The notes below the pieces were generated by a model, which was given only the letters and a program-made list of their open reading frames with translations, was not told the origin of the DNA and did not search any database. 64,000 bases of DNA from Takakia lepidozioides (Eukaryota; Plantae; Bryophyta): NCBI GenBank assembly GCA_030704615.1, contig CM060733.1:31868001-31932000 (forward strand). Direction: 5' to 3'. Of this stretch, positions 27,904 through 59,414 are shown piece by piece. Made by a program: the position numbers and the translations under genes. How positions within the stretch are numbered: position 1 is the first letter of the stretch; each line of letters opens with the position of its first letter.

Positions 27904-30900
27904 TTATATCTCAACAGTGGCGGTGGCAGCATTTGGCTTCAAAGCTGGTGCCTTGACAAGCTGGCTGTAGTTTCCCTTCTCCTTGAAGAGCTGAGAGTAG
28001 TGGTGTTTGCAATAGAGCCGACCTTCAAGGGCTGCATAGTTGGAGGGGCTGATCACACAGCCCCCATGCACACACTTGAAGCAATTCTTGTGATAGGGAA
28101 GGCTTTCCACGCTTGTCTGTCCCACCAAATAAGTCACCCATAATTTTGTTCCTTGGTCTGTCTCGTTTGATGAATTCCTTGCATTCACTCCACAACCAGG
28201 TGGATAGCACGGCAGCCCCAAAATGCTCTCCTTGCACTAAAGGTGGAGTTTACAAAAGCAACTCTCTCACTTTTTCTCTTTACTTTCTTTTTTGAAAAGA
28301 GGAAACTTGGGCCAAAATCCCAGATCAGAGAGCAACTTCATGTACTGCTCTCTGTGGGCAAGTCCCAGATCAGAGAACCTACCTCTTCACATCCTGCCTT
28401 GCTTCCTCTCTGTCAAAATAAAACAATCAAAGAGATGCTCTGCTCTACATGTTCCATTCAAGTGAGGTCTTGCTCTCAAGCTACTATGGCTGCTTGTAAT
28501 GTGCGTTAAGTGGATAGATCTTACTGGGGTGGCCAGCTGTGTGAGAGATGGGTTGGTTTATATAATGTGGGGGAGGAAGAGGGACAAAGAATGTCACAAC
28601 AGGTAGCAATAGTTACCCTTTCAATGGGGTAGACTGTCTTGTTGCATGCAACACACTTCTCTTGAGTCCCGGAAAACAAGCGCGAAGCCTTTGAGGGTGT
28701 CTTGTTCTACATTCACTCCCATCCCCACCAAAATATATGTCACAATCTAAACCTCTCTGAATCCCCAATGTCACTTCTTCCTCTGCTTCACCCAAATCCA
28801 AGCACAGGTCAAGGGAAAATACATTGTGTGGAACTTACAACTTTTAGAGTATATTGTCTAGAGTACTTTGGGTTATATTTAAGGTAAGTACATCAGCCCT
28901 TTCACTTCGTGTGCCCTTTTCACTCTGCATGGGGAATGGCAGAACAACAACAGCCACTGCCAAAAACACTGACGGGCTAAAAACCCAAAATCAACTCTAG
29001 AAGGTGAGTGTCTGCAGGAAGTATGCTCTCAAAGGATCGTCAACAATGGTTAAATAAGTCCTCTCTGTCGTTGTTCTAATTTGTCCCACGAGCCCTTGGC
29101 TGTGGGTCTTTGGTTCACATGGTTTTCCTGTTTCATTCCTTCGGCTTTGAGCTGGTCTACTTGTGACATAAGTACAACACATAAAATTACGAAAATCACA
29201 AACAGTAGAACCACTCAAAGATCATGCGCTAGAGGGCCGCCCATGGGACAAATGTAGAACAGATTCCTGCATCACGAGTTATGACGTGCCCTTGGGTATG
29301 ACGTAGCTTGCAGGTACGCACCCTTGCAAAAATATCAGTGAAGGCAAGTAGAAAAATGAAATACGCACCAAATTGTTCAGCTGCTGGTCGAACGGAAGCT
29401 TATTTGGTGTTACCCCTGGCCCACATCAGCCCCACTTTCATCCCATCAAGAACTCTCTAAAGTTTTCATATCCAAACCTCAAAGCTGCTGGTAATGAGAG
29501 TGAGCTGCAATGCACCTAAGGAAAAGAACCGTACAATGGAGTGTTCCTGTGATTTGTGTGATTACAATTGCCTTCTACTGCCACAATAGTGTTTTATCTG
29601 TTTTCACCAACTCCTGCCTATGTATCCTTGGAACATTTAAATACTTGGGTCCAGCAAGTTATGTGGAGAACCTGGGATCCGATCTATGCAATATCCAATA
29701 ATGAGGTCTACACTTATGAGTGAATCCCTGTATTCTTGAAAGAGTAGAAGGCCAACCATCGGCACTTTTGTTCTCAAAGCTCTTCTCATAGCTACCGGTC
29801 AGCTTGAACAGCTGGTTGAAATGTGGCTTGCAGTAAAGGACCCCTTCCAAGGATGCATAATTCCCCAGCTGTCACAAGCAACACATAGTGAATGAGTAAG
29901 TTCATCAGGACTGCTTTTATGCTCTAGCAATTGACTAGGAACTTGCAACCGTGAAGTCGGGATCTTTTGTTGTGGAGCAAAGACAAATTAACTCACAAAC
30001 CAGCTACCATATAGTTAGTCTCCAAGCTCCAATACCAGTATTTCCCTCTAGCCTCCATGCATGCACCTTGTGCACAAAAGCAAAATACGGAGAAGACATC
30101 CAAGCCAAAACTCTGATGTTCACACTCGCACCAAAATCCCTGAACAGAATCTGAAGGAAGAAGACCAATTGTTACGACACTGGAAATGTGCCCAAATGGA
30201 GCCCCTAAAAACCTAAAACTTTGCATCAGCACAGAGCATAAATCTCTCGATGAAACGTTGTGAGCACTTTGGACACAGATGTCAGTCAGGAAGAGGGAAG
30301 GGATTTTATGCAGACTGCATAATTTACTTAAAAGATGTAGTTGCCCTGTTAGCAAAAAGGCTCACTGGATTGCCACGGAAAATGAGAAACCATTGAGCTT
30401 TCCCTTTCATGAGATCGATTGATTTGATGCGCACGTGACGATGTCCACTACTATTACTGGATGTGTATACGCCATGTTGATGTCAGCGTTCTCAACTGCA
30501 TGACATCTTCTGAACCGTTTTGACATGAAAGACACTACATTGATCCAATCTACTATCACAATGTTACTTCAGTGTTCATCCATGAACTCCCTGTTTTGCA
30601 TCGAAAAGCAGGAGAGAACAATAGGACCCGTACATTCACAATCACGGTGTGTGAATTCATCGTTGAGTGCGGCATTAGGGAAATAGACCCAGGGTGGTAG
30701 TGGGCGGGACTGGGGATGGAGAGATCAGCAGAAATAGCAACCAGTGAGGATCAGTGTTGGTAGCACTTGACCTCCAGAGCTTCTCGCCATTACCGGTACA
30801 GATCGAAATGCTGATAGTGGACGAGCATTGCACAGTTAAGAGAACGAGAACGGAGACAGTAGAGATCTGGGTAAAGAGCCACCACACCTTCAAGGTTCCC

Positions 30901-31022
30901 TTGCAATGGTTGCATCGGAAGCACGCCTTGTGGTAGATGATACCGTCGGCTGTCAACTGGTCGACCAGATACACCGTCTTCTGGCACGCCGTGCACTTGT
31001 GCTGTGTGCCTGAAAACGCCAT
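27904..31022 (-). CDS. WLIM: Plant two-LIM-domain actin-bundling protein (WLIM/PLIM family), 5 exons, ~198 aa
   Basis: Exon 1 is 31022-30888 ([27 protein letters not shown]). Exon 2 is 29868-29757 (alternative donor 29766; [17 protein letters not shown]). Exon 3 is 29415-29369 (least certain). Exon 4 is 28706-28617 ([20 protein letters not shown]). Exon 5 is 28116-27904 ([19 protein letters not shown]). All introns are GT-AG with compatible phases. Confidence 0.93.
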
Positions 31023-31403
31023 AGCGACCAAGCTCTCCCACACCACCCCACACCACCCCACACCTCTTCCTCTCTTCCCCTCCGAGCTTGTGTCAACGTC
31101 CTCGTGCTTCGGCAACGCAAGCCAATCCACCGAAACGGTTGGGAAGCAGCGCAGATCTGCCTCGCAAGCCTGGCGAGGAAGGATCGCTGGCGGGTGCACA
31201 ACATGCGCGTGTGCGAGAGACAGTCTCGCGAAGTGAGCAGTCTGTCTGTGAGCAGTCTGCCATTTCCCCGGCTACAGACCTTCAACAGACAGCACAGATC
31301 GCCCTCGGTTCAAATCCTCGCCACCACTACGATTGCAACGCCTCCAGAAATTCACAAGAAGGCTTACACTGTTTTCTTCTATAAGCAAATCGTGGGTTTC
31401 GAC

Positions 31404-33221
31404 CAGTGTTGTGCGGGTAGTGCCTTTTTAAGGAACCCGCCAGATCCGGGTTCGGGTTTTCTTTTGGAACCAAGTCCGGGTCCCGATCCGGGTTTTTGAA
31501 ATTTGGACAATCCGGGTTCGGGTCCAGGTAGTTGTTGGGAAATATTAGCAGGTTCACCGGATCCGGGTCCTAATTAATTTATTAAATAAATTGGACAAAT
31601 AAGATTTTTAATTAAGGATAAAGCTACTTTTGGCTAGAGAAAAAATCGTTTTTATTTTAAGACACGTTCCTTCAAAAACATACCATGAATATATATTGCT
31701 CATTTAACCCTTAAGTTCCCAAGCGACCTGAATCAGGTCACTTTGAATTTGTAGGTCGACCTATTTTTTGCAGATCTAATCTGATGGGGCCCACTCCCGA
31801 AGCTTTAATGACAAGGGATTTGTCTCCAGTATGATGGAAAAAAACAAAATTAAAAAAAAACAAAAGCTACAACGTACTCTCATTTACGTTTTGGGGCCTG
31901 AAAAGGGCTTGTTGACCGCTGACGTGGCAGGTAAACAAGCCCAAAACAGATTGCACTCCAAAGGCAATTTTTGGCAGAAAATTAGCAATCTTGGAAAAAG
32001 CGCTTCACCTTCTGGTGTGTGAGCATTACATACACACATCCACCATTGGCTTTTAAAAAATTTGTAGAAAAGTACTTCATTTGGAGGCACATTTTCTCTT
32101 GTCAATTTTGAGATTTCAACCCCCATGTAATTGCATGCATAGCAAGCATAGGTGAAAAAATCAGTTGGACCTGCAATTTAGTGGGGTCATAGCCACTCCA
32201 CTATTGATTTGGAAATGGTGGGTCTTGGGGCAAGCAAAATTGGATAAAGCTAGGTTATGATTTGGTCAAACCAATTTCTTTCTCACTTTTTCTTTGGGAC
32301 CTGATATTTGAGGTCCCGGCCAACGCTATAATCTCACAATTTGCATGGTGGACTTGGCTCATTTTTTGGTATGTCATGCATAAATGAGCTGGCCCATTGC
32401 TATAAGGCTGGAATCTCCAGATGAGTTTTAGGTTTCTAGGGGCAATTTACTGCAGCTGGGTACCCAAAATTGGTAAAAAGTAAAAAAAGGGCTTGGGAAC
32501 TTAAGGGTTAACGCAAGAATTAGAATAGAGTTTGAGTTCCATTCTTCAATATCAATTATTATTTTTTAAACATGTTAAGAATAGCAATCTGCCAAATATG
32601 CCAGTAATATGATTTAAACCAATAAATAAATGCCTCAAGGTTCATAGATCACTATAGCATTGATGTGTGGGAGCTGGCCTAATAATAATATCCCAAAGGC
32701 AGAAATTATGGTGTCACTGGACCCCAAAGGGTGTAACTGTGTGACACCAATCCGTGGATTGAACCCACAACCATTGTTGAGGTGGTATGTGGCCATTACC
32801 AATGAGCTACAACTTGGTGGGGGCTGGCAGGCTGCCACAGTGGCCTATTGCTGGCACACATTGCAAAACCTACCATCTAAGGCTTGGAATGGACATAATG
32901 ATTAATGAAATATATTCTTGTTCTCTCGAAGTGGCGGGTGTTAAGTGGGAGAACATGAGTTAATTACTGTGGGGCTATTCATTGCTCCATTCCTTTTGGA
33001 TCCATTGAAGTGTTCAGCCCCACCTAAAATTAAGACCCAGACCCTCACCCCCTACACTGGCCCGCAGGTAGCGGGTTCAAGGGATTCTGGACCTTGCAAG
33101 CGGGTCCGCGTCCGGTTCCGGGTTCATTCTAGAAGGTCAGGGTTCGGGTTTTTGGTGATGGCGCGGGTCCGGGTCCTAAACCGCCGGGTACCCCGGGGTC
33201 AAAACCTGGACCCGCACAACG
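31404..33221. mobile_element. Non-autonomous hAT-type element in the LIM upstream region
   Basis: The 8-bp TSD GTTTCGAC is at 31396-31403 and 33222-33229. The left TIR is CAGTGTTGTGCGGGT and the right TIR is ACCCGCACAAC(-)G with a 3-bp loss. CCGGGT(T/C)C subterminal repeats occur at both ends. Confidence 0.85.
31708..32507. mobile_element. Non-autonomous piggyBac-like element (800 bp) nested in the hAT element
   Basis: TTAA flanks both sides (31704-31707, 32508-32511). It has perfect 17-bp TIRs CCCTTAAGTTCCCAAGC / GCTTGGGAACTTAAGGG and no transposase ORF. Confidence 0.85.
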
Positions 33222-34299
33222 GTTTCGACGTGTGTCGTGGCAAACCAATCGGACGTGCTCTTGGGGTTATTATATTTTCTGCGGAAATGACTCCAATAAA
33301 GGGTTCAGTGATAACATAACTTATTAAGATTTTTTTTTTCTCCATTAATGTTATGGGTCTATGAATAAATAAAACATTATGGATTTCTTATGTGTTTTTT
33401 GCTCTCCCACCTTGATAAGTTCTTCAAATCGCTTATCTCCCTTTTCAGCTCCAACATTTCCTTTTTCCCTTTTCTTGTGGCGACACTACCATGGAAAAAC
33501 TGCATCCCATATCCTGCTTTTTGTCCCTGCTTCTTCACAGTCCATTTTAGGACTTCAGCCGCACAAATGGGGATGTTCTTTTTGCTCTGCAAATTCACTG
33601 GACATTAAAAAAAAACTTTTATTTTATTTTTATCTCCCACCTTGGTAAGTTCTTCAAATCGCTTATCTCCTCTTTCAGCTCCAACATTTCCAACATGCAT
33701 GTCTCCTTTCAGCTCCAACATTTTTGAGGCACTAATAGTCTTCCCCGATCTGCCCTCAACTCTTCGGAAGCAAACTCTCATGATTGATTTGTATAAAACA
33801 TTCAAGTTGTACCTTCCCAAAAGCTAGCATATATTATATGGAATCAGCTCTCCAATCACAATGTCGAGCACAAAAAAAAAAAACAAAAAAAAATGAGGTG
33901 TTATAAGAGCTTGAAGAGCTAATTAAGAGCAAAAGAAAATTGATACAAAAAAATGGGGCTAAAATAAAATGTCAGAGTGGAGCCCGCGGAAGTTCAAAGC
34001 TGACCAAAAAATCTGAAGCCAAGGCTCGGGAATTGGAGCAGACACGAGCTGCATTGGCCAGCTGTTGCAAAAGGATGGAGGGGGAGATCCGGAAAGCCAA
34101 ACACGTCCCAAAAGGGAATATGGTTGATGACAAGGAGATGTGAGAAAAATTTGTACAATTTTTTGGTCAGCAAGAGTGTTTGTGGGCGAGATGGGCCCTA
34201 TTGCAAATGATATCTTCTTCTCAAGTTTTACCAACAGATTAAAATCGTCAAATGTATTCAACTGGGGTCACTTAAGATTATTATAAAAAGTTTTAATCC

Positions 34300-37200
34300 C
34301 TCTGAAGAGCGTGTAGTTGTCGAGCTTCTTAAGTCATTTTTGAAGAATCCTTACGACGACACGGTGCCTCTAACGAGAGTAAGAGATGGGCACGTCCTCA
34401 TCAGCTTTGCTTGTCGTTGTCCTGTGCATTACAAGCTCAAGGTGGAGCTTGTATCTTTCCTTCCATTCCCAAGTTCCAAGTAGTCCAGTGCAAAGGTTAT
34501 AAGCACCATAATTTTGAATCTCTCGCAGACGTTTAGCATGTTTCAAAATGTCTCTAATTGTAGAACTCTCACTACCGCTTGCTCAATCACCAAGGTCGGC
34601 AATTTTATCCTCTTCGATTTTTTGGGCAAAACGATGTCCTTGGTTCGTGCATCCTCCTCTTCATTCCACATCCGAGGGGCTTCCTCATCCATCCTTGCCA
34701 TGTACTTTGTGCAATAGAACATAGCTTCTTGCAACGTATACCCCTCCGCCATGCTACCCTCCGGGTGCGCCATTTATCTTACAAATCCTTTCAAAGTCTT
34801 CATATAACGCTCAAGGAAGTACATCCACCGAGAATGAACGGGGCCGGCAATCGAAGCCTCTTCCACTAAGTGCACTACCAAGTGCACTTGGATGTCAAAG
34901 AAGGAGGGAGGAAGGTGCATCTCCAGCATACACATTACCTCCGCCGCCTCCTTCTTCATACGTGGAAAATCTGCTTCTTCCAACTCTTTGGAGCAAATCC
35001 ACCGGAACAAGCCTCCCAATCTATAGATTGTCTCACGAACCTCGGGAGTCAATGTCCCACGTACTGCAATGGGCAAGATGTCTTTGCAATAGATTGTGGT
35101 AGTCATGAGACTTCAAACCATGGACCCCGTCTTCTTCGCTGAACTTCGTACGGAGGGATGACCCATAACCAGTTGGTGTTCGGACAGCACTTATGGTGGC
35201 TATCATTTTCTTGTATTCATCCTTTGTCCATTGCCAAGATGCGCGCTTATACTTTCACCATACAACACCCTTTGGGTCCACACCATTTTGTTCGGCCCAT
35301 AGATGGTGCATGCGACCCTGCTCCTCAAGCTCCTTTCTAACACCGAGAGAATCTCCTTTTGCAGCCACTCCCTTTTTTGTCGGCGTGCCATGAAGAACCC
35401 GAAAAAGGGACGAGTAGACATTCTTCTCAATATGCATGGGATCTAGAAGATGGCGAATCTTCAGGTCCTACATATATCTTTTTTACGTAAAAGTGACAAT
35501 GCAACGCATACCAAATGTGGAATATCATATGCATGCATATAGATATTGACGGTGTTTTTGTGGAATATGTACCGCCCAATATGACAACTCGTAGAAGATT
35601 GAAAGTCGTTTCATGTCGGGCACGTCCACTTCACCGTCCGTGCCCGCATGGGCCTCCTTCCGTCGGTCCTCCCAAAACTGCCCGGACGGTGTCATAGGGG
35701 GGGACATACTTCCTCTTTGCCATCAAACAAGTGTTTCTCTCTTCTTCTCCATCGATGGCTCATAGGAAGAAATTTGTAGTAGTTGGGATACACCATCTTG
35801 TGAAGATGGCGGGAGCTATGTGCATCAAGATCATCGCCACAATGCAAGCATGCATGGTACCCTTTGGTGCTTAGCCCCGAGCAAACAGTTAGTCATGTAC
35901 TACACATCCCGCCACATTAGCAAAAACAAAAAGTTGTCATGTGCATGGCCTATAATGTCATCTACCCCACTACGGTGCACAAGACTGTCGCCGCTACTTC
36001 AATCAATCCCAATCCTCATCGATATTATCCGGCATTGACAAGTGAATGTACGCGGGTTGTTCATGGGGAACATAATATACCTGGATAATCATGCATTGTC
36101 CAAAGCAAGATGCCTCTCATCTGAAAAGATTGTCCGGCCATAAGGTCAAGTGAAGCATCCAATGTCGGGACCCCCCTCCATAGCTCTTTAAGTTCATCAA
36201 CAAGAGGTCGCAAGTACGTGTCCATGTTTGCCACTTGTTTTTTCCCTATGAGACATTCACATCATTGTTTCAATGCTCCACCAATATGCAGATTATACTA
36301 CAAAATGAATTACACGTCTTACTCCATGATTATGTCACTCATCAATCTTGCATCCGAATTGCGTCAGAGATCAGAAGTTTAATGTAAAGTCGAAGGCAAT
36401 AATAAACATGAAATGAGTACACTCACCTGACACAATGGCAGCCAACATGATATGGCCTTTTTTAATTGAAAGATACGGAGGGATGTTGTAATTCACCATG
36501 GTCACCGGCCAAGTGGAATGTCTACATGACTGGACAGAGAATGGGTTGACCCCATCCGAGGAGAAGCCGAGGTGGACATATCGTGGGTCCTCCAAGAGAA
36601 AATACCACATCTCTTCAATATGCCTCCATGCTTGTGAATCTTGTGGCCCGCACACCTTTCCCGGGAGGCTCCGATGCGAGGCGTGTCATCTCATGAGTCT
36701 GGCCAATTCGGGGCTTTGGTATTGTGCCCTCAATCGCGGGTTGATCGGAAAGTAATGCATTTTCTAGGATGAAATACCCCATGCCCCCCACATGTAATCA
36801 TCCCATTAGCACACATAATACAACACCCTTATGTCTTTCCCTTTATGCAGCCTCTCCCTCATTTGGGTGTGAATGGTCAAACCAAACGTCGCTCCTTCCA
36901 CTCCTCACTCACTCCTTCCAAAACCACAATCAGATCTTGCATGAGTACTACTCTCTAAACCCTAAACTTTGTGGAATACACTTTATATACATTGAGAAGA
37001 TTAAAGAAAATAATCTCCATGCGAGGGGGAATGGCGCTTATACCTTGCGTGGTACTTTTTTCCCTTGGACATCATCCCGATATCGGTCTTTCTTGCACTT
37101 TGGGCACTTGGTGAGATGCGAATCATCTCCGTAGTATAGGGTTTTATCACATGGACATGCATGAAAATCTTATAGCCCATCCCCACAGAGTCCAAGAGTT

Positions 37201-37680
37201 CGCGCGCCTCTTTCCGCGACCGTGGCATCTTGGGTTTCAAGTGTGGAACAAGGATATAGTCTGCAATAGTTCGCATTATGGCAGACATCCCAACATTACT
37301 TATGCCAAATCGAATTTGAAGATTGAGCAAAAGTAAGATTGTTGAAAGTCGACTCACTTTCGCCCCTTCGTACAATGGAGTTCTCGCCTCCCTCTCCATG
37401 TCATTTGAGGGGGCCATTTCAGGATCATTGATTTGCCGGGTTCCCTCTTCATGGGATGCATCAGCGCCCACATGATGCATTAAGAGATCCTCCATGGCTT
37501 GCACATCCTCCTGGTTAATTCCATGCTCATTGTTGTTGTCACTGTCGCTATCACTATCATAGTCATCATCGTCCGGTACCATGGGGGCGGCGTCTCGTCC
37601 ACGGCTCCCGCCTGATGTACTTGGGTTGTTTTTGGATAGGGTGCCAAGAAAAAAACCGGGAAGGAATGGACAAAATCCTG
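34300..37680 (-). pseudogene. CACTA Tnp2/TnpD transposase (Transposase_21 and DUF4218-type regions), disrupted
   Basis: ARTPLYEG; HACPCDKTLYY..CPKC; DSQAWRHI..DPRYVHLGFSSDGVNPF..STWPV..NYNIPP; LDPMHIEKNV; LPPSFFDIQVHLVVHL..GPVHSRWMYFLERYMKTLK..HPEGSMAEGY. It has frameshifts, stops (e.g. 34774), a deletion near 35130 and several introns. Confidence 0.92.
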
Positions 37681-38690
37681 ATACGAACAAATGAACATAG
37701 GGACATATATTATAATGTGTCTTTGCAACCATACACTTCATTATAAGCGAAATGCAAACAACAACCTTCAATGTGTGTGTGCATCAAATATGTCATTCAA
37801 TAATTACATGTATGTGCGCAACGTACACGCATGCAAAGTTTCAAACCCAAACAAAATCATTTGCCCCCCCAATGACGCATTCACCCTATCAACCAATTTT
37901 TATTTATTAATGTGAAAGAAAATCCTCTCATGCCATTGCACCCAACAAACGGATGTGGCTCAAGCTTCATTTTTTCCTGAATATGTGTGCAACACCTGTA
38001 CAAAGATCCAGTAGGGAAAAGAAAAGAAAAGAAAAGAGAGAGAAAGAAAAAGAAAAAAAAGAAAAAAACCTCCCCAACGACGCACTCACCCTTGCACCAA
38101 TTTTGAATTAAATCGAATTTAAATAATTTTTTGCATTTAGAAAATATATGATTGCGGTATTGAGGGGCGTAATGATTTTATTTTTAGCTCTATTTTGTTC
38201 TGTGACATCGGGCTTTACACCACTACATCCATGCAAAAAATGGGACAAACAAAAAATGGAAAAAAAAAAAAAAAAATGTGTTTCTAGGGTCACTTTTGCA
38301 TAACTCTATATGAAGAGTGCATGAAGTTGAAGATAACTGAACTTTGGAGTGCAAATGAGAGAACAAAATCTGGTTATGGGTCCAAATGACTTTTTTTACT
38401 CCCAAATTTTGCATGCACATTGCATATGTTATCATTAAGCATATGGCTTGAAAAATGGAATAAAAAAAAATCATCTGCAGGCGAAACACAATTTTCCGTC
38501 TCTATGACACGTAGATGCGTTCAACACTAGAATGACCCATTGAATCAACTTGGTTCAAGCTCATATTTGGTCCACATGTGCATAAGTATGTTGAGATCAC
38601 ATATGCAAAGTTGCAACCCACACGAGCAACAAGAAAAAATTTTACATCAATCGATTAATCGGATGTATACAAAGTACATCATGAGAATAT

Positions 38691-39857
38691 CTACAATGCC
38701 CCTCTACGCGATCCTTGTCTCAAAGGAACCCTATTTTTATCATACACATCCCACTCATGCTGTGATCGGAAGTCCCAATCATCCCGGGAGAACTCGTATG
38801 ATGCAAATAGTTCGCTACCAGCCCTAATAGTCCTACTAGAACATGTCATCACAAACATGTGCATCCCCTCACAGTATATTGATGTATGACCACAAAAGCT
38901 CTCATGCCCATCGCTTCGCTCGTCCCATACTACATTGATTCTCCTAGGATGACCAAAAGAACTATTGACCAGCCCAACAACATTGCCGAAGATGTCGGGG
39001 TCACCATCACAAAATCTGATCTCAATGGGAGACAACCCCCGTCTACGTACATCCTGTCCGTTGACACACAAAATGTAGGGTAGGATGTATGGGGCTTCGA
39101 GGCGTAATGTACGGAACTCCGCGGAGGTGTAGTATGGACCGTAGTAGGGAAACAAGTCCACTATGATGTTTCTCCGAGTGGGAACCACAATATCATTGAC
39201 CGTGAATAAACCCCGACCCATAGCAGGGTTTGTAGCGGCTCTCACAACATACCGTCTCCCCCAATACTCGAACTCCACATTTTCTCGGATGGGGGTGGGA
39301 GGGTCGAGATGATTCCCCCAATAACGAGGCTGGACGGTCCTCAGTAACATAGTCCTATGTGCCTCCCATCGGGGACGAGGATCCGGCTCAGGCCGCCCAA
39401 GCCGAAGGGAAAGAAACCTAGGGTGAAGCCGACCCCTCCTAGGGGTTCGGGGGGCACATGCACGTGGAGGTTGAGGTGGTACTGCTGGCGGAGGAGATGA
39501 AAGTGGAGGTGGTTGAGGATGTAATGTCGGAGGTGCAACCGGGGGTACAACATCCGGATCAGGTACAACCGGAGGTGGATCCGGCAAAGAAACAGACGGG
39601 GTGGGGGGTGGGGGGGAGGCCACAATCAGGGGGATCGCCTGAGGAAACTGGAGGGGGGGGGGGGGCTGGGCTGCTCGTCGCCGGCCATAACGCCTACGAC
39701 ACCTACGATACCCCTCGACCCTACGCATCTCATCTACGTGCTGCTGGGGGAACCAACTGGTCACATCGGGCACATGCTCTGGCACAAATTCTGCAAGTAG
39801 ACCGGCGCGAAATGCCTCCTGTGCAATGTGATTGCGAGCTTGGGCATCAAGTTGTGG
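38691..39857 (-). CDS. Proline-rich linker plus SET-domain (lysine methyltransferase-like) exon inside the CACTA element
   Basis: Open frame with YVVRAA..MGRGLFTVNDI (SET motif I), FPYYG, DGDP..GNVVGLVNSS (NHS-like) and RTIRAGSELFASY (motif IV, Tyr retained). There is a TTGCAG acceptor at 39858. Confidence 0.72.
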   Translation of the reverse strand, partial: PQLDAQARNHIAQEAFRAGLLAEFVPEHVPDVTSWFPQQHVDEMRRVEGYRRCRRRYGRRRAAQPPPPLQFPQAIPLIVASPPPPTPSVSLPDPPPVVPDPDVVPPVAPPTLHPQPPPLSSPPPAVPPQPPRACAPRTPRRGRLHPRFLSLRLGRPEPDPRPRWEAHRTMLLRTVQPRYWGNHLDPPTPIRENVEFEYWGRRYVVRAATNPAMGRGLFTVNDIVVPTRRNIIVDLFPYYGPYYTSAEFRTLRLEAPYILPYILCVNGQDVRRRGLSPIEIRFCDGDPDIFGNVVGLVNSSFGHPRRINVVWDERSDGHESFCGHTSIYCEGMHMFVMTCSSRTIRAGSELFASYEFSRDDWDFRSQHEWDVYDKNRVPLRQGSRRGAL

Positions 39858-39999
39858 CTGCAATGTGCGTAGTGAATGACGCATCAATACTTATGTCGTA
39901 ATTTTGATTCATGTATGCTTACCAATCATACTATATTATTAGATAAACCTAAATGTACCTTAAATGAATGTTAATGAGAGGGGTGGGAAAAACACTTAC

Positions 40000-40395
40000 C
40001 TTTGCCGCATCCACAATTTTGTTCTTCTTGTAATGTTTTTCGACAACATGCGGTCGCCGCCTCGGTGGTCTGGTGCCGCCCGGCGGTATCCGTTTCCAAC
40101 ACTTAGTGCACCAACACTCAATCCTATCGGGGGGGTCAAATGTGGACGTGGTTGGACAGGGTAGCCCGCAAGGGGGCAACCCGCGGCGTGCCCGACTCGA
40201 TCTTGGAGTGTCAACATCCTCCGCATCACCTGAAATTTGGCCCTGGTCCCTTCTACGATTGTCCCCGGCAGCCTGTATTGGATCAGGTGCAATGGGTGCC
40301 TCCTCGCCACGAAAAATGGTCGCTCTAGGGCCACAATCGATATGTGGTACTACCTCCCCATCCTCGAGGGAAACGGGTCGATGTTTCCTCACCAT
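40000..40395 (-). CDS. First coding exon of the CACTA element with a transposase-associated Zn-binding motif
   Basis: ATG at 40395. IECWCTKC...HVVEKHY resembles the I.CPC..C...V..H motif at the N-terminus of CACTA transposases. It ends at a consensus donor AAG|GTAAGT (39999). Confidence 0.7.
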
Positions 40396-42229
40396 CCCAT
40401 CCTAATTACCACACACCACCAACACTTTCATTTCTCAAAAATCGTTGGCAAAAAAACCCTATGCCTCAGCCTCGGGGCTTTCAAAATTGGTAACCAAAGG
40501 CGGAGCATCCTTATGGTGCTAGAGCCCAAGACAATAAATCCTTCCTCTTGTACTACGGAAAAATTTGTTGAGATCCAGCGCTTTGCGATTATCAGATTGA
40601 ACCACATTTTGGGTATGTGAATCCTAATTACACCGTTTATCCTTTTAACCCCAAGACCCACAACACCAAACCGCCAATCCAAAACCCAGCACCATAAAGA
40701 AAAGCAAACACCCTAACCCAGTACCATATGAAAAATAAATAAAAAAATAAAAACTAAGAAAACCAAAAGGTCCTAAACCCTAAATCCAAAAAGGCCGGCC
40801 GTCGCCTCCTGCGACACCCTGGCGTCGCATTGGACGACGAGTTTTTTTTTTTTTTGCCTGGGGATCGCACCCCGCGACGGACAGCCGTCGCGGGGGGCAA
40901 CGTGTTTTCTTAATTTATGGGGCCGGGGGTCGCAAGAAACGACGGCCAGCCTTCGCAATCTTCATTTTACATTTCAAAAAAGGGCGGACGCAGGCGTGCG
41001 ACAGCCGGGGTCGCACTTGTGGGCGCCGAGCCTTTTTTTTCCTAAGTGCTTGAAGCATTTTTTTTCCCCTCCCGTTTTCGTTTGTTCTTTGGGAGAGAGG
41101 TAGTTCAAAGAGTGGGGCTTTGGATGGAGGAGAAACGCACCTGTTGCTGAGAGCCCGAGGTGGTCGCAAGGCCCCAACTAGTTTGCCCCAACGCCGCTCC
41201 AACGCCCAAGGTAAGCACCGTCTTCTCCTCACTTTCTGTCTTCTTTCTTGCCCTAAGCACGGGCTGATGTCTCTCTCCTCTGTGTGGTAGGAATGCCGCG
41301 CAGAGGCGCGACCTAACGAGCTGAAGAGAGAGAGAGCCGTGGTGAGCGGGGGAGAGACGCCCTGCAGTGGCGGGGACTCGCGCCGCTGGTAGTCGTGATA
41401 GCACCCGCAGCAGCTCGCCGCAGCCGCTCACTTCAAGCACCAGCAGCGCATAGGTACGTCAGGGCAACGCTCTCCCTTTCCTCCTTCTTCTGTTTACTGC
41501 TCAAGGTAGTAGTCTTCCTGCCCTAACTTTAAATTTAGGTCTGGTGCCAAGAGTGGGATAGACCCTTGAGCGCATCCATGATGTCCTCCCCCATGTCACA
41601 GACTGGAAACAGGTTCAGGGAAGTTTTCTTCCTAACTTCATTTTTCATCGGACATTTTTCTGGTAATAGACATGGCTTTGGACACTACACACACTCTAAG
41701 TCAGGTTATCCAGCAAGGTCAAGACTTGCGGGTCCATATTCAGATCCTTGAGAATCTCTTTTACTCTCTTCTCCCAGGCTCACCCTGTTTGACAGGGCGT
41801 CATGTTTCCAAGATATAGAGTCGATTAACTTAGGATATCTGTGTTTTGGACATATGTTCTGCACTAAACCCACCATCTGACCTTGAATTTAGGGTGTCGG
41901 GAGCTTAAAAAGAGAGAAGCACAGAAGAGAGGGAAGATTACTCATGTCATGTCAGACATGGACAAGACCCCCTAGGGTCATTGTCAATTAAAGACATAAA
42001 CAGCCCATAAACAGGGCACCATCTAACACTTCCATTCTTGTCATGACTTCCCAGTTGATTTCACCCAATATCATGATAAAATAGGGTGGAGGGCGGGGTT
42101 GTTTTTTTATGTACAATCTGACAACAAGACAAGCATATAAGCAAGCATCTTGTGTAACTGAAAAATCAGATTGCTGCAGCATGTTCAAATTCCTGTAAGT
42201 AACCCAGACATGCACCATGCAAGGCTCCT

Positions 42230-44473: not shown

Positions 44474-44705
44474 AACCTTCTGTTAACAGGAGCTTCATTT
44501 CGTAGAACTGAAATGAACCTCGTGTCGACACAAGGGGGATTTGGAGAACTTCAACAAAACCTCGTGTTAACACGAGGTTGTTTTCCTGGAACAAAAATGA
44601 ACTTCGTGTTGACACGATGTTGTTTTCTGAGAACTAAAATCATCCTTGTGTCAACACAAGGAGGATTTGGAGAACTTCAAGTAAACCTCGTGTTGAGACG
44701 AGGTT
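44474..44705. repeat. Six 22-bp palindromes (AACCTCGTGTTAACACGAGGTT) at an exact 42-bp period
   Basis: Units start at 44474, 44516, 44558, 44600, 44642 and 44684. The 20-bp linkers are related to each other. Confidence 0.9.
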
Positions 44706-44887
44706 GATTTGATCATCTGTCTATCTGAAGGTAGTTTCTTGTGTTTGCTAATGAAAAGAGAATGACAAACCAATGCGACAAATGCATTGACCCACGCATA
44801 GCAAAGATGTTAGACGACATACATTGAGAGTCACTGGACTTGAACAGTCATTCCATTACAAGTTGTAGTCAAGGAAAACACAGATTT

Positions 44888-47800
44888 TTATGGGCTTGTA
44901 TCCCGCTGTAGAAGTGTGTTGACTTTGAAACTCATAGTGGCTTGGTGAATGAAGAAGTCGCGCTTTGGATCACAAACCATCCTTCTCAAGAAGACGAAGT
45001 AAAGGTGTTTGCACGGTATGAACTTCCCTCTCTTTCCCAAACTACTTGAAAGCATACCAACAAAATCAGGACATGTACAATTGGGAAAATTGGAAACAGT
45101 GATTTCGTACGTCCTGTCCTGCAGCGCAGATGCGGATGAGATCATGGTGAAGACCCGACCATACCCTGGATCAGGCACTTCCATTGTTCCCGCAACACGA
45201 GCGTGAAGCATTCTGGCGGACTCAATTTTGCCGTAGTGTTCTGCGGTTGGAGGGAATCGTCGAACCAGCTTCCCATTCCGTCTGGTTGGCCACAAGTGAG
45301 CGTCAGGCGGAGGTACCCGTGAACCGCTTCCACTTGAAGCACCTTCACGTGCAATGGAATGTCTGGCTAGGGAGAAACCCGCCTCTTCCAGCATTGCGAT
45401 CTCTCGGTGAGTGAGACCTGTGCCCATCTTCACAGGCCACACGGTTGGTGGAGTAGGCTTCCTTACCACGGAAGGCCTCACTGTACCATGCACACATCTC
45501 CCACAATCGTCAGCGCAGAACCAGAACTTGTGGTTCTTTGCCTCGCCTTGTCCGTAAGGGAGAAACAAACCCGTGAATGTAGGAGCTGCAGTGCGTTCTT
45601 TCCCTCTGGAGATTAATGATGTACATTTTTCATGATTGGTGGCCCTGATCGCCGCGCATTTCACACGAGATCCAGCACTTGTGCGTTCTATATGCCAAAC
45701 CTCGTCCAAGCCCATGGACTCGATTATATGCGGCACCACGTTCTGGTCTTCAACCATTGCAGTGACAATGCTTGATGCAGGGGTCCGGTCTGGGGCAGAG
45801 TAGCCCTCACCTGTGGATGTTCCGCAATTCCATCTCTGATCCAAGGGAACACGTGGCGTCGAGAAGTTCACCCTGTCCGCCTATGGGAATCTGCATCCGA
45901 TCCCGGAGGGGTGTCCAATTTCCGTTTGCAAGACCCGAATCTCTCTTCGCCTTCCAGATGGGGAACTCTTCCCACGAGAGGGGTGCCATCTGCACATATG
46001 CTCACTGCCCGCGCTATTTTGCTGGGATCCCCTGATCTTCCAGCTGCCCGCAACATCAACTCGCTCCTGTCCGGACCTTTGCCACCAAGGCCACCCCTCA
46101 AGAATGACCTATATCTGGTTTGCTGCTGCAGAGCACGAATGAGGTCATCGGCCGTCGCCGCATACAAATCTCTCTTTTTTTGCCGGATTGCTGCAACCAG
46201 GCATTGTGCACTGTCTCCGCAAGATTGCAAGAAGGCATGTCCGCCATCTCCTCAATGGACATATGCTGCAAGGCAAAAAAACAGAAAGCCGATATTAGGA
46301 TTGGACCCTGAAAGATATATCCGAAGCACCCAAACGAAGGTGAATACAAACCACTCACCGTTGTCATGGCCGCTCCCCACTGTCGGTAACGGAAGTGCCA
46401 AAATGCGAACCAGTCTTGCAGTGCCCTCATGCTGTCCTCCGATGCCGCTCCAGATGAGTACCACCAGGCACGAATTGTCTGGAACAATGTATTCGCTTCC
46501 CCCATAGTTTTGGCGTCTTTGTACTGGTTGCACAGTTGGCGATGCATAGTCTGCATATCTGGCTTGATGTATGTGTGTGTTTGTCCAGGGATTGTGTCCA
46601 ATGGAAAAGACATGTACGTTCTCTTCCAGGCATTGGCACTTTTGGTCTCCCGTCCCGAACACAATGCGGACAGCGTTGAAGTTAGCTTGAGCACTATCGG
46701 CCATGAAACCAACGAAATTGGGAGATGGGAGACCATTGGAGGCCATAACTCGAATGAGAGCTTCCCACATGAGCTGTTGTGAATCTGTGTCCTCTGACTG
46801 CATGTCACACACTGCAATTGTCATGACCCGCTGGTACACAGGGTCGTAAACATGACATGCCATTGTGGTCCAGTCTTTAACCCTCTTGACATGATCGAAC
46901 ATAAGGAAGCAGTTGCCAAGATCGCCACCCTTCTGCATACGTTTAACCAGGCTGACCCCGCTGCCCTCACCTTTTGTGGACATTTTGAACAAGAACACTT
47001 TCCTCCTTGTCCGGGAAAACGCTGTCTTGGATGTAGTCATACATGCTCCTTTTCTTCAAATCCATAATATTGTCCATATAACCTCGGCTCCCAGAGCCCA
47101 TTCTTAAAGCGTTCACCTGATTCCTAATGTTTGGAGAAGTCAAAGTTGAGAAATGGTCCATAACAGTGTCCAAAGCGATCCCTCCAGTATTCCTCCAACC
47201 GAATTTGATGCACACAGAATACGGCTTTCCAGAAAGGACTTGCTCGCCCCCATGGCAATTGCAGATGTGGTTCCAGTTGATTGGTATCCAACTCTTGCCT
47301 TATCAGACGCGAGACTGTGTCAACGCTCTCTCTATAATCCCCCTTGGACACAGGGTGGTTGTGAAAACCGAAATGGACACAGGCTCTAGTCAGGGTTTTG
47401 AATCGATGCACCACATAATACATTCTGGCGCCACACAAAGCAAGGCAGCAAGGTGGTACCCTACAGAACTTGCACACAAAAGTGTTACTGTATGGTGGTG
47501 TCACCCCAGGCTTGAATGGATTCTCACTGACACCATCCCATTCGCTTTGGTTTTGCACACCTGACAATGCGAAGTGTCTGCATTTCATGTTCTCGCATTT
47601 CAGGTGCCCATTACAGACTGTTCGCCTGAATATGAGGTTGTCGTTGTTGTGAATATTGGAGGTTTTTGTGCGGCACCAAGGGTGCCCATCGTGCTTTTTG
47701 TCCATTCCTTCCAGGAGACTAGAAATGCCCCCCAAGGCAGCTCGAAAACAGTATTACCATCAAAAGATTCCGGCAAGAATGCCACCCTCTGAATATTGAA

Positions 47801-48361
47801 AGTGCTCCAGTCTATCCCCCTCAACTCACTCTTGAATCCTGCCATCCCACCCATGGCTTTCAGTTTAGGAATGACACTGGTGATCTCCTCCACATCTGCT
47901 TCTACATGTGGACATGGCTGATCCACGGGCGGTATTGCACATGTGTCATCGGAGGATGAGTCCGAAAGCTCAACTACAGTGTTAACGGTACTCGTCTCCT
48001 TCTTGACAACCACGGGTGTTTTCTCCTGGGCCACTGATGCTGCCGTGCCAGGAGTTACGAAAGATCCTGCAGACTGTCTCAGAGGAGCACTGAGCACCCT
48101 GTATCTGCCTGGAGGCACTCTCCATTGTGTGGCTGGTGCAGTATGCGAAGGTTTCTGGAACACGTACTTGAGCAGTTTTCCATTGGCATCGTACACTTCC
48201 CTTTGAAGGAATAGAGTTCCATTTTCCAACCGAAACTGCGTTGCGAGGACGTGTTCATGCACCAGCGCAAAACCATCATCTTCCACCTCGTAAGAAAATG
48301 GCACAGGGTGGTCCTCACTGAAGAAGTCCGCGTCAAGGGAGCCCATGGCCTGGGAGGCCAT
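44888..48361 (-). pseudogene. Mutator-like (MULE) transposase with an N-terminal GCM-like Zn domain and a C-terminal SWIM finger, frameshifted
   Basis: DGHPWCRTKTSN..RRTVCNGHLKCEN..C..CKFC...GFHNHP (GCM/WRKY-like). The catalytic core reads LMFDHVKR, FMADSAQA, TCLFHW (CxxH) and CNLAETVH. SWIM is CTCPDF-x-CKHL. It has multiple frameshifts and probable short introns near 46270-46357 and 45810-45870. Confidence 0.8.
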
Positions 48362-49017
48362 ATGTCGATGTTGCTTCAGAAAGTAGAGTTCACAGTCCGA
48401 CGGTGCTTGTGAATGCAAATTGTGTGGGAGCGGAGTTTTTGGCGTCCTCACAGAGAATTGCAGGTATCGCTCGGCTTGCAGATCTCCTAACGCGGGTTTC
48501 CACTTCTGTGAAATGTCTCCCCATGCGAACCAAGCGCATGGTCACAGAGTGCCCAATGCGGAGTCCATAATGTCAGCCCTAATCCTAGAATCCAACTGTT
48601 TTTTCACAAGTGCCCCACCAGTGCATTCGTTGACAGATTGACTGACAGAGCCGCCGTTTGGTTGTCATGTCAGAGAGGCCAGAAGAGATGCCCATTTCCA
48701 TTTAATTTTAACGGCACCTGCACCGCTGTACAACTGTACATACTTGACATTCCTCTGGAACATCCCAGAATAAATTGCCCAATAATGAACTTTTTCAGAT
48801 GAGAGGTGATTAGACCCCAACGATTTTTGGATGGATGAGGATCCAATGATCTCCGCCGATTTTCATAACGATTAGATGGACACGTGTTCGCCATGCGAGT
48901 CAGTGGCGCACTGAACGTTCGCGAAGCATCTTGGCGTTGAAGGCCTTGCGATGAACCTCCCATAGTCCTCTTTTTTCCCTCTTCTCCTTATTGTCTTTGC
49001 AACCCTGGATTCTGCAG

Positions 49018-50490
49018 AGACGGTGACCCATTCCGAGGGAGAAGCAAGCGTCGAAGAACACTTTATTTCACATCAAACAAGCAAAGGGCACGCGCTAAGG
49101 AGAGGATGAGGAAGGCGAGACGGGAACTTAGAATGGGAGAAGAAACATCCGGCGTAGAGGAAGACGAAGGGCAAAAACAAGATTCTGCAACCGCAGTGTG
49201 GAGAGGAAGGTCTTGAAGTGATCCCGGAGGCGACCGATGAGCAACCTCCAATAGAAGGGGGGAGGACGAGGAAGTGAGCTGGGCTCGGGAGAGAAAGCAC
49301 TGCGAGTAGAGAAACAGGTCTTCAAAGAGCAGGGAGAACAAACGGACGCGGAAACGATGCCGTCTGCCCTTGTTTCGCACCATCGGGACCTCCTTGGAAG
49401 CATGCTACCTCCAGACCAAATGGAAAGATTGAATGCGTCAGGAGCATCATCAAGTGCAAAGAAGAAACCGGAGGTGGCTATGGAGGCTGATCGGGAAGCT
49501 CTGTGCGTTTGAAGTCGAAGCTAAGCATTGAGGTCGACATCAACCTTGCGTCAACGCAAGGTTGAAGTCGACCTCCTAAGTGTATATATTGGGCATCAAA
49601 ACAGTGCAGATGCTGCACTACAATCAAGCTAGACAGACATGGATGCTTGCGACGCATCATCAAGTTCGAAGAAGAAGAAGAGACGGCAATCTCCTTTTCC
49701 TGTAGCTTTTGTGTTTGTTCAACACCGATCCGAGAGCTCGCAATCAACCTTGCGTCAACGCAAGGTTGATGCCAACCTCCATGGTGTATGTTAGAACTTC
49801 TAGTGAAACGAACAGATGCCGCACAGGAATCAACATTGCGTTGACGCAAGGCTGGTTTTGATGATTTTTTTGTTCAATGGAAGCGTCCGATCTCTCATAC
49901 CCTGAACTGTAAGGTAAGGAAAGTTGATTAGTTGAAGCTCCCAAAAGAACCCTGCGTCAACGCAAAGCATTTTTTTGCTTTAAAAGTCTTTCCTGTATGC
50001 CTTTCAGTCTAAACTACATCCCCATCAATCAACCTTGCATCAAAGCAATGTTGATCCATGGGTGCTCAATCTGTCACTCACAGATAATTCATTCTGTGCA
50101 GAGGAAAAGAAAAAGGAAATCCGAGGGGGAAGATTTGGCCGCGTCAGAAGGTGAAGGTGAGGAAGACTCATCGGAGGGAAACTATGAAGACAAGGCCGAG
50201 GAGATAATTGGTGGGCAAAAAGTGAACTCGTCGAAGGTGATTATGTCGATGGAGGTTCCCGGCGGAAACCTGGTCATTCCGCTGTGCAGGATGATCTCCA
50301 TGCCCGCTGTTCGACCGGCATTGAGGAATGATATAACGAAGTTGAAGAACGACTTTGTTCACGGCTATGTCAAAGGATCAGCAGTGTTCTACGTATCCAC
50401 TATGAACACGAAAGGAGATGAGTGTCTTGTAACAGAGGACATTGAGCAAGGTTGGGATGCATGCTGGCGGGATGTAAACAAGGAGTTCGA
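49018..50490 (+). pseudogene. Divergently oriented second gene next to the MULE (acidic/NLS region, then a ParB-like N-terminal segment), truncated
   Basis: A low-complexity exon runs to 49473, followed by an intron (49474-50101). The next exon reads RKRKRK..EGEGEEDS..IPLCRMISMPAVRPALRNDITKLKNDFVHGYVKGSAVFYVS..W..CW..N.EFE and is cut off by a LINE fragment. The ParB-like call is inference. Confidence 0.5.
49530..50052. repeat. Five 22-bp palindromes AACCTTGCGTCAACGCAAGGTT within a predicted intron
   Basis: Copies at 49542, 49746, 49832, 49948 and 50031. The first extends to a ~46-bp hairpin (49530-49575). Confidence 0.85.
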
Positions 50491-56590: not shown

Positions 56591-57582
56591 CTCCATTGGG
56601 GAGCCTAATTTATACAAATATCTTTGCAAGCCCATGCGACTCGGGAGCTAAATGAAATTAAGAACATCATTACTAACAAACTGACCATTTCTGTTTTACA
56701 GCTTCAATTGACTATCTTCCTGCTCAGCGACCAGCAAAATCATCGCTTGGATATCGCTTCACAATACTTTGTGGAATACAGAACAACAATGTAGATCTGA
56801 TGAAAGCAGGCTTCTGTACATCTGATGTGTGCCAATCTAGGAGGCCAAATCTTTTCTGCAAACGAGCGGGTCGCTCACGAATGTGCACCCTTCAGGAATT
56901 CCAGGAACTGTTCAACACTGATCAAGAACAGGCCACCAAGTCTGACGGTTGGAGAGGGCCACTAATGACGCAAAGCTTGTACCTTTTCTCCAAGGTCATT
57001 TAGTTCTTATCACTTGAGAGCATTGAACTTCCCAGCATTTGAAGTCGAAATCTGCAAGAGTCAAATCGTATTTGGGCATTCGAGGAGAGAGATGATCCCG
57101 AGATGATGCCTCTGATGATGCCAGTTCATGCTCAAAAAGGTCAAAACTTGTTGGACGGAATCAGGTGAATGGACACCTCATAGGCGCTTAGAACTGCCTC
57201 AGGCGCACACCCACGTACGTAACGTTGGAGCCTCCCCGTGATATAGCCGGGGAGATTCTGCGCTTGGGTCGCAGGGTAAGATTTTCGTTGCGATTGAGTC
57301 CATGATCCTGCCTTGAAAGGGAAGACAAAGCTGGTGCGATCGAGCTGGTTGATTGGACCAATCAATTGAGATAATTGCCTGTTCGTGTCTCCGTTGGACC
57401 TCCCTAGATCTATTAGTACACATAGGCATATTTTGATTCTTCAGTACGGTTGAATCTCTCTCTCCTAAGCTTAGAAGTCAACATTAACCTAATTGAGGTG
57501 TGACTTGAACTAATTGAGGGGGCTGTTGAACAGTGTGCGCAGCCAGCGACATGTTAAAAACTGCCCTCCCCTAGAATAAGTT

Positions 57583-59050
57583 ATCTCAAATCAATGTGGT
57601 AGTCCTGCAACAGACTGCTCGGGATTCAATTCTGACGGTCAGGTCTCATACGCATTTTAGCATGCTCTCAGAAACAATAAAGGGTCTGATCACAGCGACA
57701 GAACGAGAAAGAAAGCGATGCACTTGCCCTCAATAAGGGCGCTTCAAGAGATCTGTTGCAAAGCTAGTACTTCATAGTCCTTTAGAGGGATGTACACCAA
57801 TTGGGCATTCATCAATTGCAGTGATTGGGAGCCCATCAATAGTGCCCCACCCGTAACTAACCGTCCTTTGGTACAATTGAAATTCTTGTAACATCTGGAC
57901 AAGAGAGGATGCACAACAGTCCACATACTGAGAGACACACACGAGCTGTCAAAACAAAGAGCAACAGCGTCCGCGACACACGGTTTAGCTATTTGCGCTG
58001 AGAGTGTACTGAGCGCTGCCGGGAGGTAAGCTCAAGATACTATGAAGGAAAGACAGACTCCGAGTTGCTATCTATACTCTGGCAGTCGAGGGTATCAAAC
58101 CCTCCCTTGAACGGGAAATTTCTTGGAATCTGCCCGAATCAATGGCCCCATATGAAGAGAAGAAAGTGATCACAATTGACAATTTGGCACGTTCTATGGG
58201 TTAACACCAAAATGCGGAACTGAACTGCTTTTCAATTGGATAACAAAGTTCAGGTTTTTTCTTCATGAATGTGATCTTAGACAATCTTTAGTTCTCCAAT
58301 TTCACAGAGATCCATTAGCTGGCGAACACAAATTATACCAAAGGATTGCATATTTCTGCTCAAAGCTCGGAAAAACAAGACCGAGGGGATATTTGAGAGT
58401 CGGTCACTAAATCATCTGACGCAGCAGTTTGTGTGTCGATCAGGGATTGCACAAGGGTGAAAGGATCACGTGCCTGATCTCGTGCACCATGCCCGTGTGT
58501 CCTGCACCGAGAAGCTCTGCATGCAGGATCGCGTGATCATTCCTGATTCGTGGGAGATTGACACCGCCTCATTTCGACTAGTCCCAATACAGAGAATGCA
58601 CTACATTTCTTTATTTTTTTCTGAATTAAAGGGAACGGAGGCCCTGTACTCAAAAGAGAACGAGGAAAATAACCTCGCCAGGGCCATAGGCCAATACAAT
58701 CGGGGGGACAGCTGCAATGGGCAACAAGTAACAATGACGACAGGTTCACTGAAGAATCAGCCCAGTTCAGAACCTTGTCTTGAAAAACAAATCCAAGGAT
58801 CATAAATCTAAGAGAACCTGTAGAGAGCCCTACCATCTACCTAAGTCCAAGCCTAGACTACATTTCTTGATGTTGCTACTGCTACCAAATGTTGAAGAGC
58901 TGGACCTCTCTTTCTTGGACACACTGATTCTTTTGGGAAGTCTGTGATAAATTCAGGGTGAATGAGACGTTAGTTGGGGTAGGCCAGAGACGTGATCCAA
59001 GTTTGAGGAGAACAAGAGGGAGCAGAGCAGAGCCTAGCGTTATGAGGGTA
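57583..59050 (-). repeat. Inverted copy of 15817-17167
   Basis: Reverse-complement identity over many blocks, e.g. ATCTCAAATCAATGTGGT versus ACCACATTGATTTGAGAT. Confidence 0.9.
58612..58856 (-). mobile_element. Short retroposed insertion (5'-truncated LINE or SINE)
   Basis: The 12-bp TSD ACTACATTTCTT is at 58600-58611 and 58857-58868, with a T tract at the left edge. The paralogous segment near 16155 has the site once and lacks the insert. Confidence 0.8.
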
Positions 59051-59414
59051 GGGTAGGGCCAACTCGGGTATTGAATAAGCGACCAGGCTGGTATTGGCAG
59101 TTGTAATACTAGGGTTAATAGCCACCTAGTGTTGATACCTAGGCCAAATACGATCAGGTATGCTTCTAATTAAAAGGGAAGATAATAGGAATAATGTAAG
59201 AACTTAATGCAAGCGCGTCAGGACGGTCCAGCCCTGACACCCGTATCGCCGGTTCTTCGCCTCCGGCAAACATCGAAAGGCAACCGGCTGGGCTCGGTCA
59301 ATCCCTCCCCACCCCCGCCCTCATCCCATCGGCGTCATCGCCCCAGGCGCGTCGTCGCCCCTGCGTCGTCGTTCTGCGACACCAGTCCGCCGCTTCCAGC
59401 AGTCCGCCAGTTCC

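Follow-up and report, generated by a model that had tools for sequence, protein, structure and literature searches.

A SET-domain gene beside a CACTA transposase remnant in Takakia lepidozioides, probably an accessory gene of an old land-plant transposon lineage

Genes and features at the locus

We analysed a 64-kb window of Takakia lepidozioides CM060733.1, i.e. the whole stretch of DNA to which all coordinates below refer. Its minus strand carries a gene for a SET-domain protein (the SET gene) and, downstream of it, the remnant of a Tnp2 transposase of the CACTA (En/Spm) type. Our analysis suggests, with a probability of about 80%, that the SET gene is an accessory gene of a distinct and old lineage of land-plant CACTA (Tnp2) transposons. 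The features of the locus are as follows.

34546 to 37783, minus strand: Tnp2 (CACTA/En-Spm) transposase remnant with PF02992 and PF13960, collinear with the transposases of the homologous loci L001-L009
38691 to 38786, minus strand: C-terminal tail and stop codon of the SET gene, unconserved, low-confidence in the structure model
38787 to 39320, minus strand: SET domain, ~178 residues, with GxG (GRG), FPYYGPYY, VNSS and ELFASY
39321 to 39857, minus strand: first part of exon 2, a disordered Arg-/Pro-rich linker of low complexity, unconserved among homologues
38694 to 39857 plus the stop to 38691, minus strand: exon 2 of the SET gene, 388 codons
39858 to 39999, minus strand: intron of 142 nucleotides (nt), GT..AG, skipped exactly by a contig of run X9
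40000 to 40395, minus strand: exon 1 of the SET gene, 132 codons from the ATG at 40395 to the last codon AAG at 40002-40000
40811 to 41014, no strand assigned: a group of three GCGAC-N-GTCGC hairpins located 5' of exon 1, against an expectation of 0.13; the rest of the window has none

The SET gene has two exons with one continuous frame. The minus-strand open frame 39887-38691 encodes 398 amino acids (aa) and holds GRGLFT, FPYYG, GLVNSS and RTIRAGSELFASY. In the gene model, exon 1 ends in a phase-0 donor, AAG/GTAAGT, and the acceptor TTGCAG ends at 39858, so that exon 2 opens at 39857 with PQLDAQ in phase 0, and the 132 and 388 codons plus the stop form an open frame of 520 codons. A zinc-like CxCxxC...H..H motif in exon 1 (IECWCTKC..HVVEKHY) begins at 40116. 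An earlier reading of the letters of the window, here called the original prediction, had described a 389-codon exon with these motifs, the ATG at 40395, the phase-0 donor and acceptor, and a fusion of about 520 aa, and all of these are as it described.

The 40000/39857 junction, where the original prediction had suggested looking for spliced reads, was found in a contig of X9, a run that we guess to be RNA. We aligned contigs from four public runs of the same organism to 34750-40700. The X9 contig joins 39857 to 40000 and omits exactly 142 nt, the ends of which read CT..AC on the plus strand, i.e. GT..AG on the strand of the gene; the joint has 60 letters on its shorter side. This contig is ~5% different from the window and therefore comes from a sister copy. 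Other contigs of the four runs read through the intron at 39858-39999 unspliced. A second GT..AG intron, shown by a contig of run X8, lies in the transposase at 37043-36764. The homologous locus L004 has a gene structure like that of the window: its exon 1 has 88 codons and a GT donor in phase 0, and an intron of 125 nt separates it from the SET exon. The X8 contigs also diverge from the window just upstream of the ATG, beside an AG at 40403-40402, and their sequence continuing upstream of 40403 is not present in the window; this departure is either an intron in the 5' untranslated region or the point where the window copy leaves its sisters.

Identity of the SET domain

The C-terminal ~180 residues of the protein are a true SET domain. 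Exon 1 and exon 2 were searched and folded separately. An exhaustive phmmer search with the last 209 residues against 1.84 billion representatives gave 60 clusters at E<=1e-3 and 25 at E<=1e-10, the best-scoring of which are 33-42% identical to the query with E down to 3e-19. The SET domain PF00856 was matched by 27 of the 30 homologues scanned (best E 6.5e-9), and several full-length members of the family exceed the Pfam gathering score for SET. A profile of the family found SET structures of the LegAS4/RomA type in PDB at E 1.5e-4, with MLL, EZH2, SETD8 and ATXR5 weaker. The AlphaFold2 model built from the family alignment has a predicted local distance difference test score (pLDDT) of 81.4 and a predicted template modelling score (pTM) of 0.77. 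Its top 50 Foldseek matches in PDB are all SET enzymes (SETD8, SET7/9, LegAS4, G9a/GLP, MLL, EZH2, ATXR5), with E down to 2e-6 and probability 1.0. The SET fold claimed from short motifs is thus confirmed by the model, by the Pfam matches of the homologues and by the LegAS4 profile match. Viral SET proteins also match the domain, and so does a Streptophyta SET cluster of the ESM Atlas (TM score 0.70 over 162 residues); a language-model search likewise gives SET clusters.

The named homologues are many paralogues of Riccia sorocarpa and one Ginkgo protein, and the rest come from Logan, ENA and JGI contigs. A word-index homology search with the whole open reading frame (ORF) or its C-terminal region found nothing, probably because the relatives are too distant and the words of the Pro-rich linker swamp the search. 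Repeated with the family alignment, it gave 10 proteins only, all named ones being from Riccia.

The SET gene within the transposon

The SET gene sits inside the element just upstream of the transposase and has been inherited with it across lineages. We compared the DNA around ten homologues, covering L001-L009 by tblastn with pieces of the window, and L010 and L011 by gene calls and tblastn. The order on one strand is the same in every locus: SET, transposase N-region, PF02992 core, middle pieces and PF13960. SET followed by Tnp2 was found in 7/7 lineages (the window, L001, L002, L003, L004, L005-8 and L009-11), which share only 30-60% protein identity and are drawn from Riccia sorocarpa, a metagenome and Logan contigs in addition to the window. 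The tblastn comparison proposed in the original prediction gave co-occurrence of the two genes in every locus it covered.

The Riccia loci L009, L010 and L011 represent a textbook CACTA element that encloses the SET gene. Each lies on a different chromosome; the three share 94-98% identity across ~11 kb and have the termini CACTACTAC. The similarity within this family begins with CACTACTACAAAAC and ends with GTAGTAGTG, with the SET gene inside. Target site duplications (TSDs) of 3 bp flank both copies that have two ends on record, TGT in L009 and AGA in L011, and the 3' end of L010 runs into an assembly gap. The family has the subterminal repeats TACCATGG/TACGAT.

The SET domain and the transposase have diverged together. 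Their pairwise identities among the seven lineages are correlated with Mantel r 0.69 and p 0.0014 over all 5040 permutations, a value to which host relatedness may add since four of the seven lineages share one host. The correlation fits one old acquisition of the SET gene followed by co-inheritance with the transposase. Because the gene order is conserved and the two genes co-diverge, we place the SET gene of the window inside the element as well.

Two further observations concern the Riccia loci. A third gene of ~340-400 aa lies on the opposite strand upstream of SET (L009:5616-7744 on the minus strand, also in L010 and L011). It has no Pfam match, is absent from the window and is weakly similar only to L003:8542-8856 (E 5e-8); we leave it outside the conserved core because, beyond its own family, only L003 has it and the window does not. 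Gene model P0003 of Riccia has the end of the SET exon spliced to the acidic N-region of the transposase (L011:11601), and in P0090 SET is joined to the start of PF02992, so the annotated 'host' SET proteins of Riccia are partly chimeric transposon models. In L004, a pair of terminal inverted repeats (TIRs) at 3665/9748 with the TSD ATT was tried as the element ends and rejected, since its right arm lies within the transposase coding sequence.

State of the window copy

The copy in the window is a dead element, with a broken transposase, unrecognisable ends and an open SET frame. We class it as a CACTA remnant because of its transposase and its gene order. Pfam matches on minus-strand pieces are strong for PF02992 (E 4e-23) and PF13960 (E 1.5e-24), and the transposase exons are recognisable, with frame shifts near 37170, 36690, 35710 and 35083 and a TAA stop in frame at 34776-34774. 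At 35083, the contigs of sister copies vary by an indel of 1 nt. The contrast drawn earlier between an open SET frame and a broken transposase holds, 520 open codons standing against four frame changes and a stop. With five disabling lesions in a transposase remnant of ~900 codons by estimate, the 520-codon SET gene should have about three at the same rate but has none, which is weak evidence that the open frame is more than luck (about 1 in 20 by our own estimate). In the four runs of this organism, contigs 90-99% similar to the window extend over both the SET and the transposase parts; they represent many copies, some of them frameshifted.

Two candidates for the element ends were rejected. 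The perfect 25-mers at 16922 and 57844 are part of another pair of inverted repeats, 1.4-2.4 kb long, and the candidate end CACTTAGGAAAAAAAAGG at 41048-41031 has no partner. The GCGAC hairpins near the 5' side, where no other repeat-like feature was seen, may be repeats of a subterminal or promoter kind, and the other end of the element has no matching cluster of them.

Points against and alternative explanations

Several observations weigh against the reading preferred here. The Pfam scan of the window protein itself gave no SET match, and a single-sequence search of PDB gave no real match, only a chance helix-turn-helix at E about 0.6. Neither a CACTA terminus nor a TIR pair or TSD was found around the window copy; CACTA and looser CAC..GTG ends were tried and only chance-level pairs appeared, so the copy is decayed or truncated, and the CACTA terminus that the original prediction had placed beside the SET gene was not found by these searches. 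That X9 is an RNA run is only a guess, and the spliced contig in it derives from a copy ~95% identical to the window copy and not from the window copy itself; were X9 DNA, an intron-less copy would still imply an RNA spliced at some time. The ratio of nonsynonymous to synonymous substitution rates (dN/dS) among the three recent Riccia copies is 0.5-1.4 (19-23 changes), and one of these copies has a stop in the SET domain. We conclude from the last two facts that single copies decay neutrally. We rejected the Riccia dN/dS as a test of selection, as it is uninformative and fits neutral decay after insertion, and we infer selection on the SET gene only from its deep conservation. The remaining points of this kind lie in the domain: the whole family has Ser where the canonical NHS motif has His, ELxxDY lacks its Asp, Gln replaces the motif Asn in some members, and the domain is without a post-SET region, many members ending a few residues past the last motif.

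These last features would also be expected if the SET-like domain were catalytically dead and served as a binding module or decoy on histone tails or a host factor, an alternative that we consider unlikely. The window has NSS for NHS and ELxxSY for ELxxDY, changes that had been read earlier as a possible sign of altered or lost activity. We assessed conservation over ~30 sequences at about 30-35% identity, with positions numbered on the domain of the window. G37, G61, Y64, Y82, N129 and E170 are invariant, and the nearly invariant positions include G35, F39, D105, G106, P108, N113, G116, S120, G168 and Y175; the window retains 21/23 of the invariant or nearly invariant positions. In terms of the classical SET motifs, GxG is GRG, YxG is FPYYGPYY, NHS is VNSS and ELxxxY is ELFASY. 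Conservation is thus complete or nearly so at GxG, at the motif Asn and at both the Glu and the final Tyr of ELxxxY, which argues against a dead domain. The Ser in place of the NHS His, nearly invariant in the alignment, is a trait of the whole family and not a lesion of the window copy. LegAS4, the nearest solved relative by profile, has YINFS where the family has YINSS, and LegAS4 and RomA are active histone methyltransferases. The earlier concern over NSS is therefore weakened. Small viral SET proteins without a post-SET region are likewise active. Methyltransferase activity of the family is likely in our judgment, and it is not assured because of the Gln in a few members and the missing post-SET region.

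It is very improbable that the SET gene is an ordinary or domesticated host gene which stands by chance beside a dead transposase. The window taken by itself would allow this, since no TIR or TSD encloses the gene and its frame is open though the transposase is dead. In Riccia, however, the gene lies in TSD-flanked copies and on three chromosomes, and the runs of the same organism contain many copies with 90-99% similarity, some of them frameshifted. Plant CACTA elements and Mutator-like elements (MULEs) often capture host fragments, and recent copies decay neutrally here, but capture of a host-gene fragment by one element without any element function (Pack-CACTA transduplication) is more improbable still, since the same gene occupies the same place in seven lineages of 30-60% protein identity, co-diverges with the transposase, and keeps its own exon-intron structure and active-site motifs.

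First exon and its possible sharing with the transposase

A CxCxxC...H motif upstream of SET is shared by the window, L003, L004 and the L009 family, and the gene models P0005 and P0011 also have it; this likeness was judged by eye. The original prediction had the SET exon spliced to a transposase-associated zinc exon. The splice to a CxCxxC exon stands, given the X9 joint and the structure of L004. The identification with the transposase-associated domain PF13963 is tentative: the Pfam scan of exon 1 of the window gave no PF13963 match, and P0005 is the sole homologue with a match, a weak one (E 0.15) over the CxCxxC..H part.

One first exon might serve two products. Between the SET gene and the transposase, no in-frame CxCxxC..H motif was found at the loci examined. 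In L004, the open transposase frame has a phase-0 acceptor with a pyrimidine tract precisely at its first codon, and this sequence would be compatible with a first exon that serves both the SET and the transposase products. The window copy has no in-phase acceptor for joining exon 1 to the transposase, and among the contigs of the four runs only the joint of exon 1 to SET was seen and no transcript joining exon 1 to the transposase. We speculate that the SET exon may be nested in the first intron of the transposase, so that one promoter and one CxCxxC exon would yield a Zn-SET or a Zn-transposase protein by alternative splicing, both aimed at the subterminal repeats of the element, with the SET product marking the chromatin of the element or its transposase and thereby shifting the silencing pathway of the host. 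We hold this arrangement to be tentative and rather doubtful. If it were true, it would be a two-product design like that of En/Spm in which the role of TnpA is held by a chromatin enzyme, and the design would have been conserved in land plants since before the split of liverworts and Takakia.

Proposed mechanism and comparison with known systems

The SET protein might act on the element that encodes it. The kept GxG, the motif Asn, the Tyr of ELxxxY and the 21/23 retained positions suggest an active lysine methyltransferase dependent on S-adenosylmethionine (SAM), and the cofactor pocket of the domain looks intact. The zinc-like N-terminus, the basic linker or both could bring the protein to the DNA of the element or to the transposase. 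There it might methylate a histone or the transposition machinery, which would alter silencing by the host or transposition of the element. The product of intact copies could also act in trans on dead copies such as that of the window.

A parallel in plant CACTA elements is En/Spm of maize, which makes its transposase (TnpD) and a second protein (TnpA) by splicing. The second protein binds the subterminal repeats and counteracts methylation. The SET protein of the window is unrelated to TnpA (no PF03004 match), its gene lies upstream of the transposase and not downstream, and here only the SET splice was seen, with no shared-exon transcript. In the primate gene SETMAR, a SET domain and a transposase are also linked by splicing, but there a host SET gene captured a dead mariner transposase, whereas here mobile elements carry the SET gene as cargo. 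The fold is shared with LegAS4/RomA of Legionella, SETD8 and SET7/9, LegAS4 being the best profile match and having the same YIN[F/S]S variant; these enzymes are only 13-19% identical to the domain in structural alignments, and their contexts are a bacterial effector and animal host enzymes.

SET genes have been described in other DNA transposons. HarbingerS elements and MuDR families of Phytophthora contain a gene for a SET histone methyltransferase (Kojima and Jurka 2014, cited by PMC12730594). These are likewise cut-and-paste elements with their own SET gene as a second, non-transposase gene, but they belong to PIF/Harbinger and Mutator instead of CACTA/Tnp2 and live in other hosts; the comparison is by description. 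SET captures by Helitrons are also on record, and in Bostrychia moritziana, a red alga, the Plavaka accessory gene PAG2 encodes a DNA methylase and SET; the authors who described it discuss self-modification (bioRxiv 10.1101/2025.02.11.637652). Plavaka is related to EnSpm/CACTA and has SET among its accessory genes. PAG2, however, joins a PF01555 DNA methylase to SET, whereas the SET gene of the window has a CxCxxC exon and a Pro-rich linker and no DNA methylase, and the Plavaka transposases are only distantly related to plant Tnp2. In Arabidopsis, VANC of VANDAL (MuDR) elements is an anti-silencing protein (Hosaka et al. 2017, cited by PMC12730594). VANC resembles the SET protein as an accessory protein encoded by a transposon and thought to act on the epigenetic state of its own element, but it is no enzyme of known fold and acts on DNA methylation, while the protein here has a lysine-methyltransferase fold, known from sequence and model.

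The original claim of novelty was too strong in view of the SET genes of HarbingerS, Phytophthora MuDR, Helitrons and Plavaka (PMC12730594; bioRxiv 10.1101/2025.02.11.637652). Our full-text literature searches, with Repbase outside their reach, found no SET gene described for land-plant CACTA elements. Few transposons carry enzymes able to rewrite their own epigenetic state, the known cases being VANC, the fungal TET/JBP genes, the SET gene of HarbingerS and the red-algal Plavaka genes. To these would be added an old and widespread land-plant CACTA lineage with a SET-type methyltransferase as its second gene. DNA transposons in many species of the green lineage preferentially carry H3K27me3, i.e. 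trimethylated lysine 27 of histone H3 (PMC11982613). If the enzyme acts on histones, it could be asked directly whether a plant transposon is able to influence the choice of silencing mark placed on it. A test is practical since Riccia sorocarpa has complete, TSD-flanked copies and the liverworts include tractable models. Family members are filed in Riccia as host 'SET domain-containing proteins', and the counts of host SET genes are therefore inflated.

Neighbouring features in the window

Other repeats and genes surround the element. The following were noted.

10340 to 10631 and 14568 to 14853: direct repeats, 97-99% identical and 4.2 kb apart, which look like the long terminal repeats of a short retroelement
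16151 to 17527 and 56691 to 58612: inverted copies of a 1.4-2.4 kb repeat, ~40 kb apart and 85-96% complementary in blocks, enclosing the studied region
30675 to 31199, minus strand: ORF containing a stretch that resembles a LIM domain, probably a host-gene exon beside the transposon cluster
31440 to 31570 and 33050 to 33250, minus strand: clusters of short GGACCCGGA-like repeats downstream of the transposase remnant
44474 to 49789, minus strand: Mutator-like remnant
59413 to 60250: array of degenerate GTAACCC-rich repeats of 43-69 nt

The Mutator-like remnant includes an ORF at 44888-45871 with a SWIM zinc finger (PF04434) and further ORFs to 48451, and is flanked by arrays of ~42-nt hairpin repeats at 44474-44710 and 49526-49789. 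The inverted repeats that enclose the region may be another element present twice, or else they may form the arms of a large structure. The GGACCCGGA-like clusters could be the subterminal repeats of another element.

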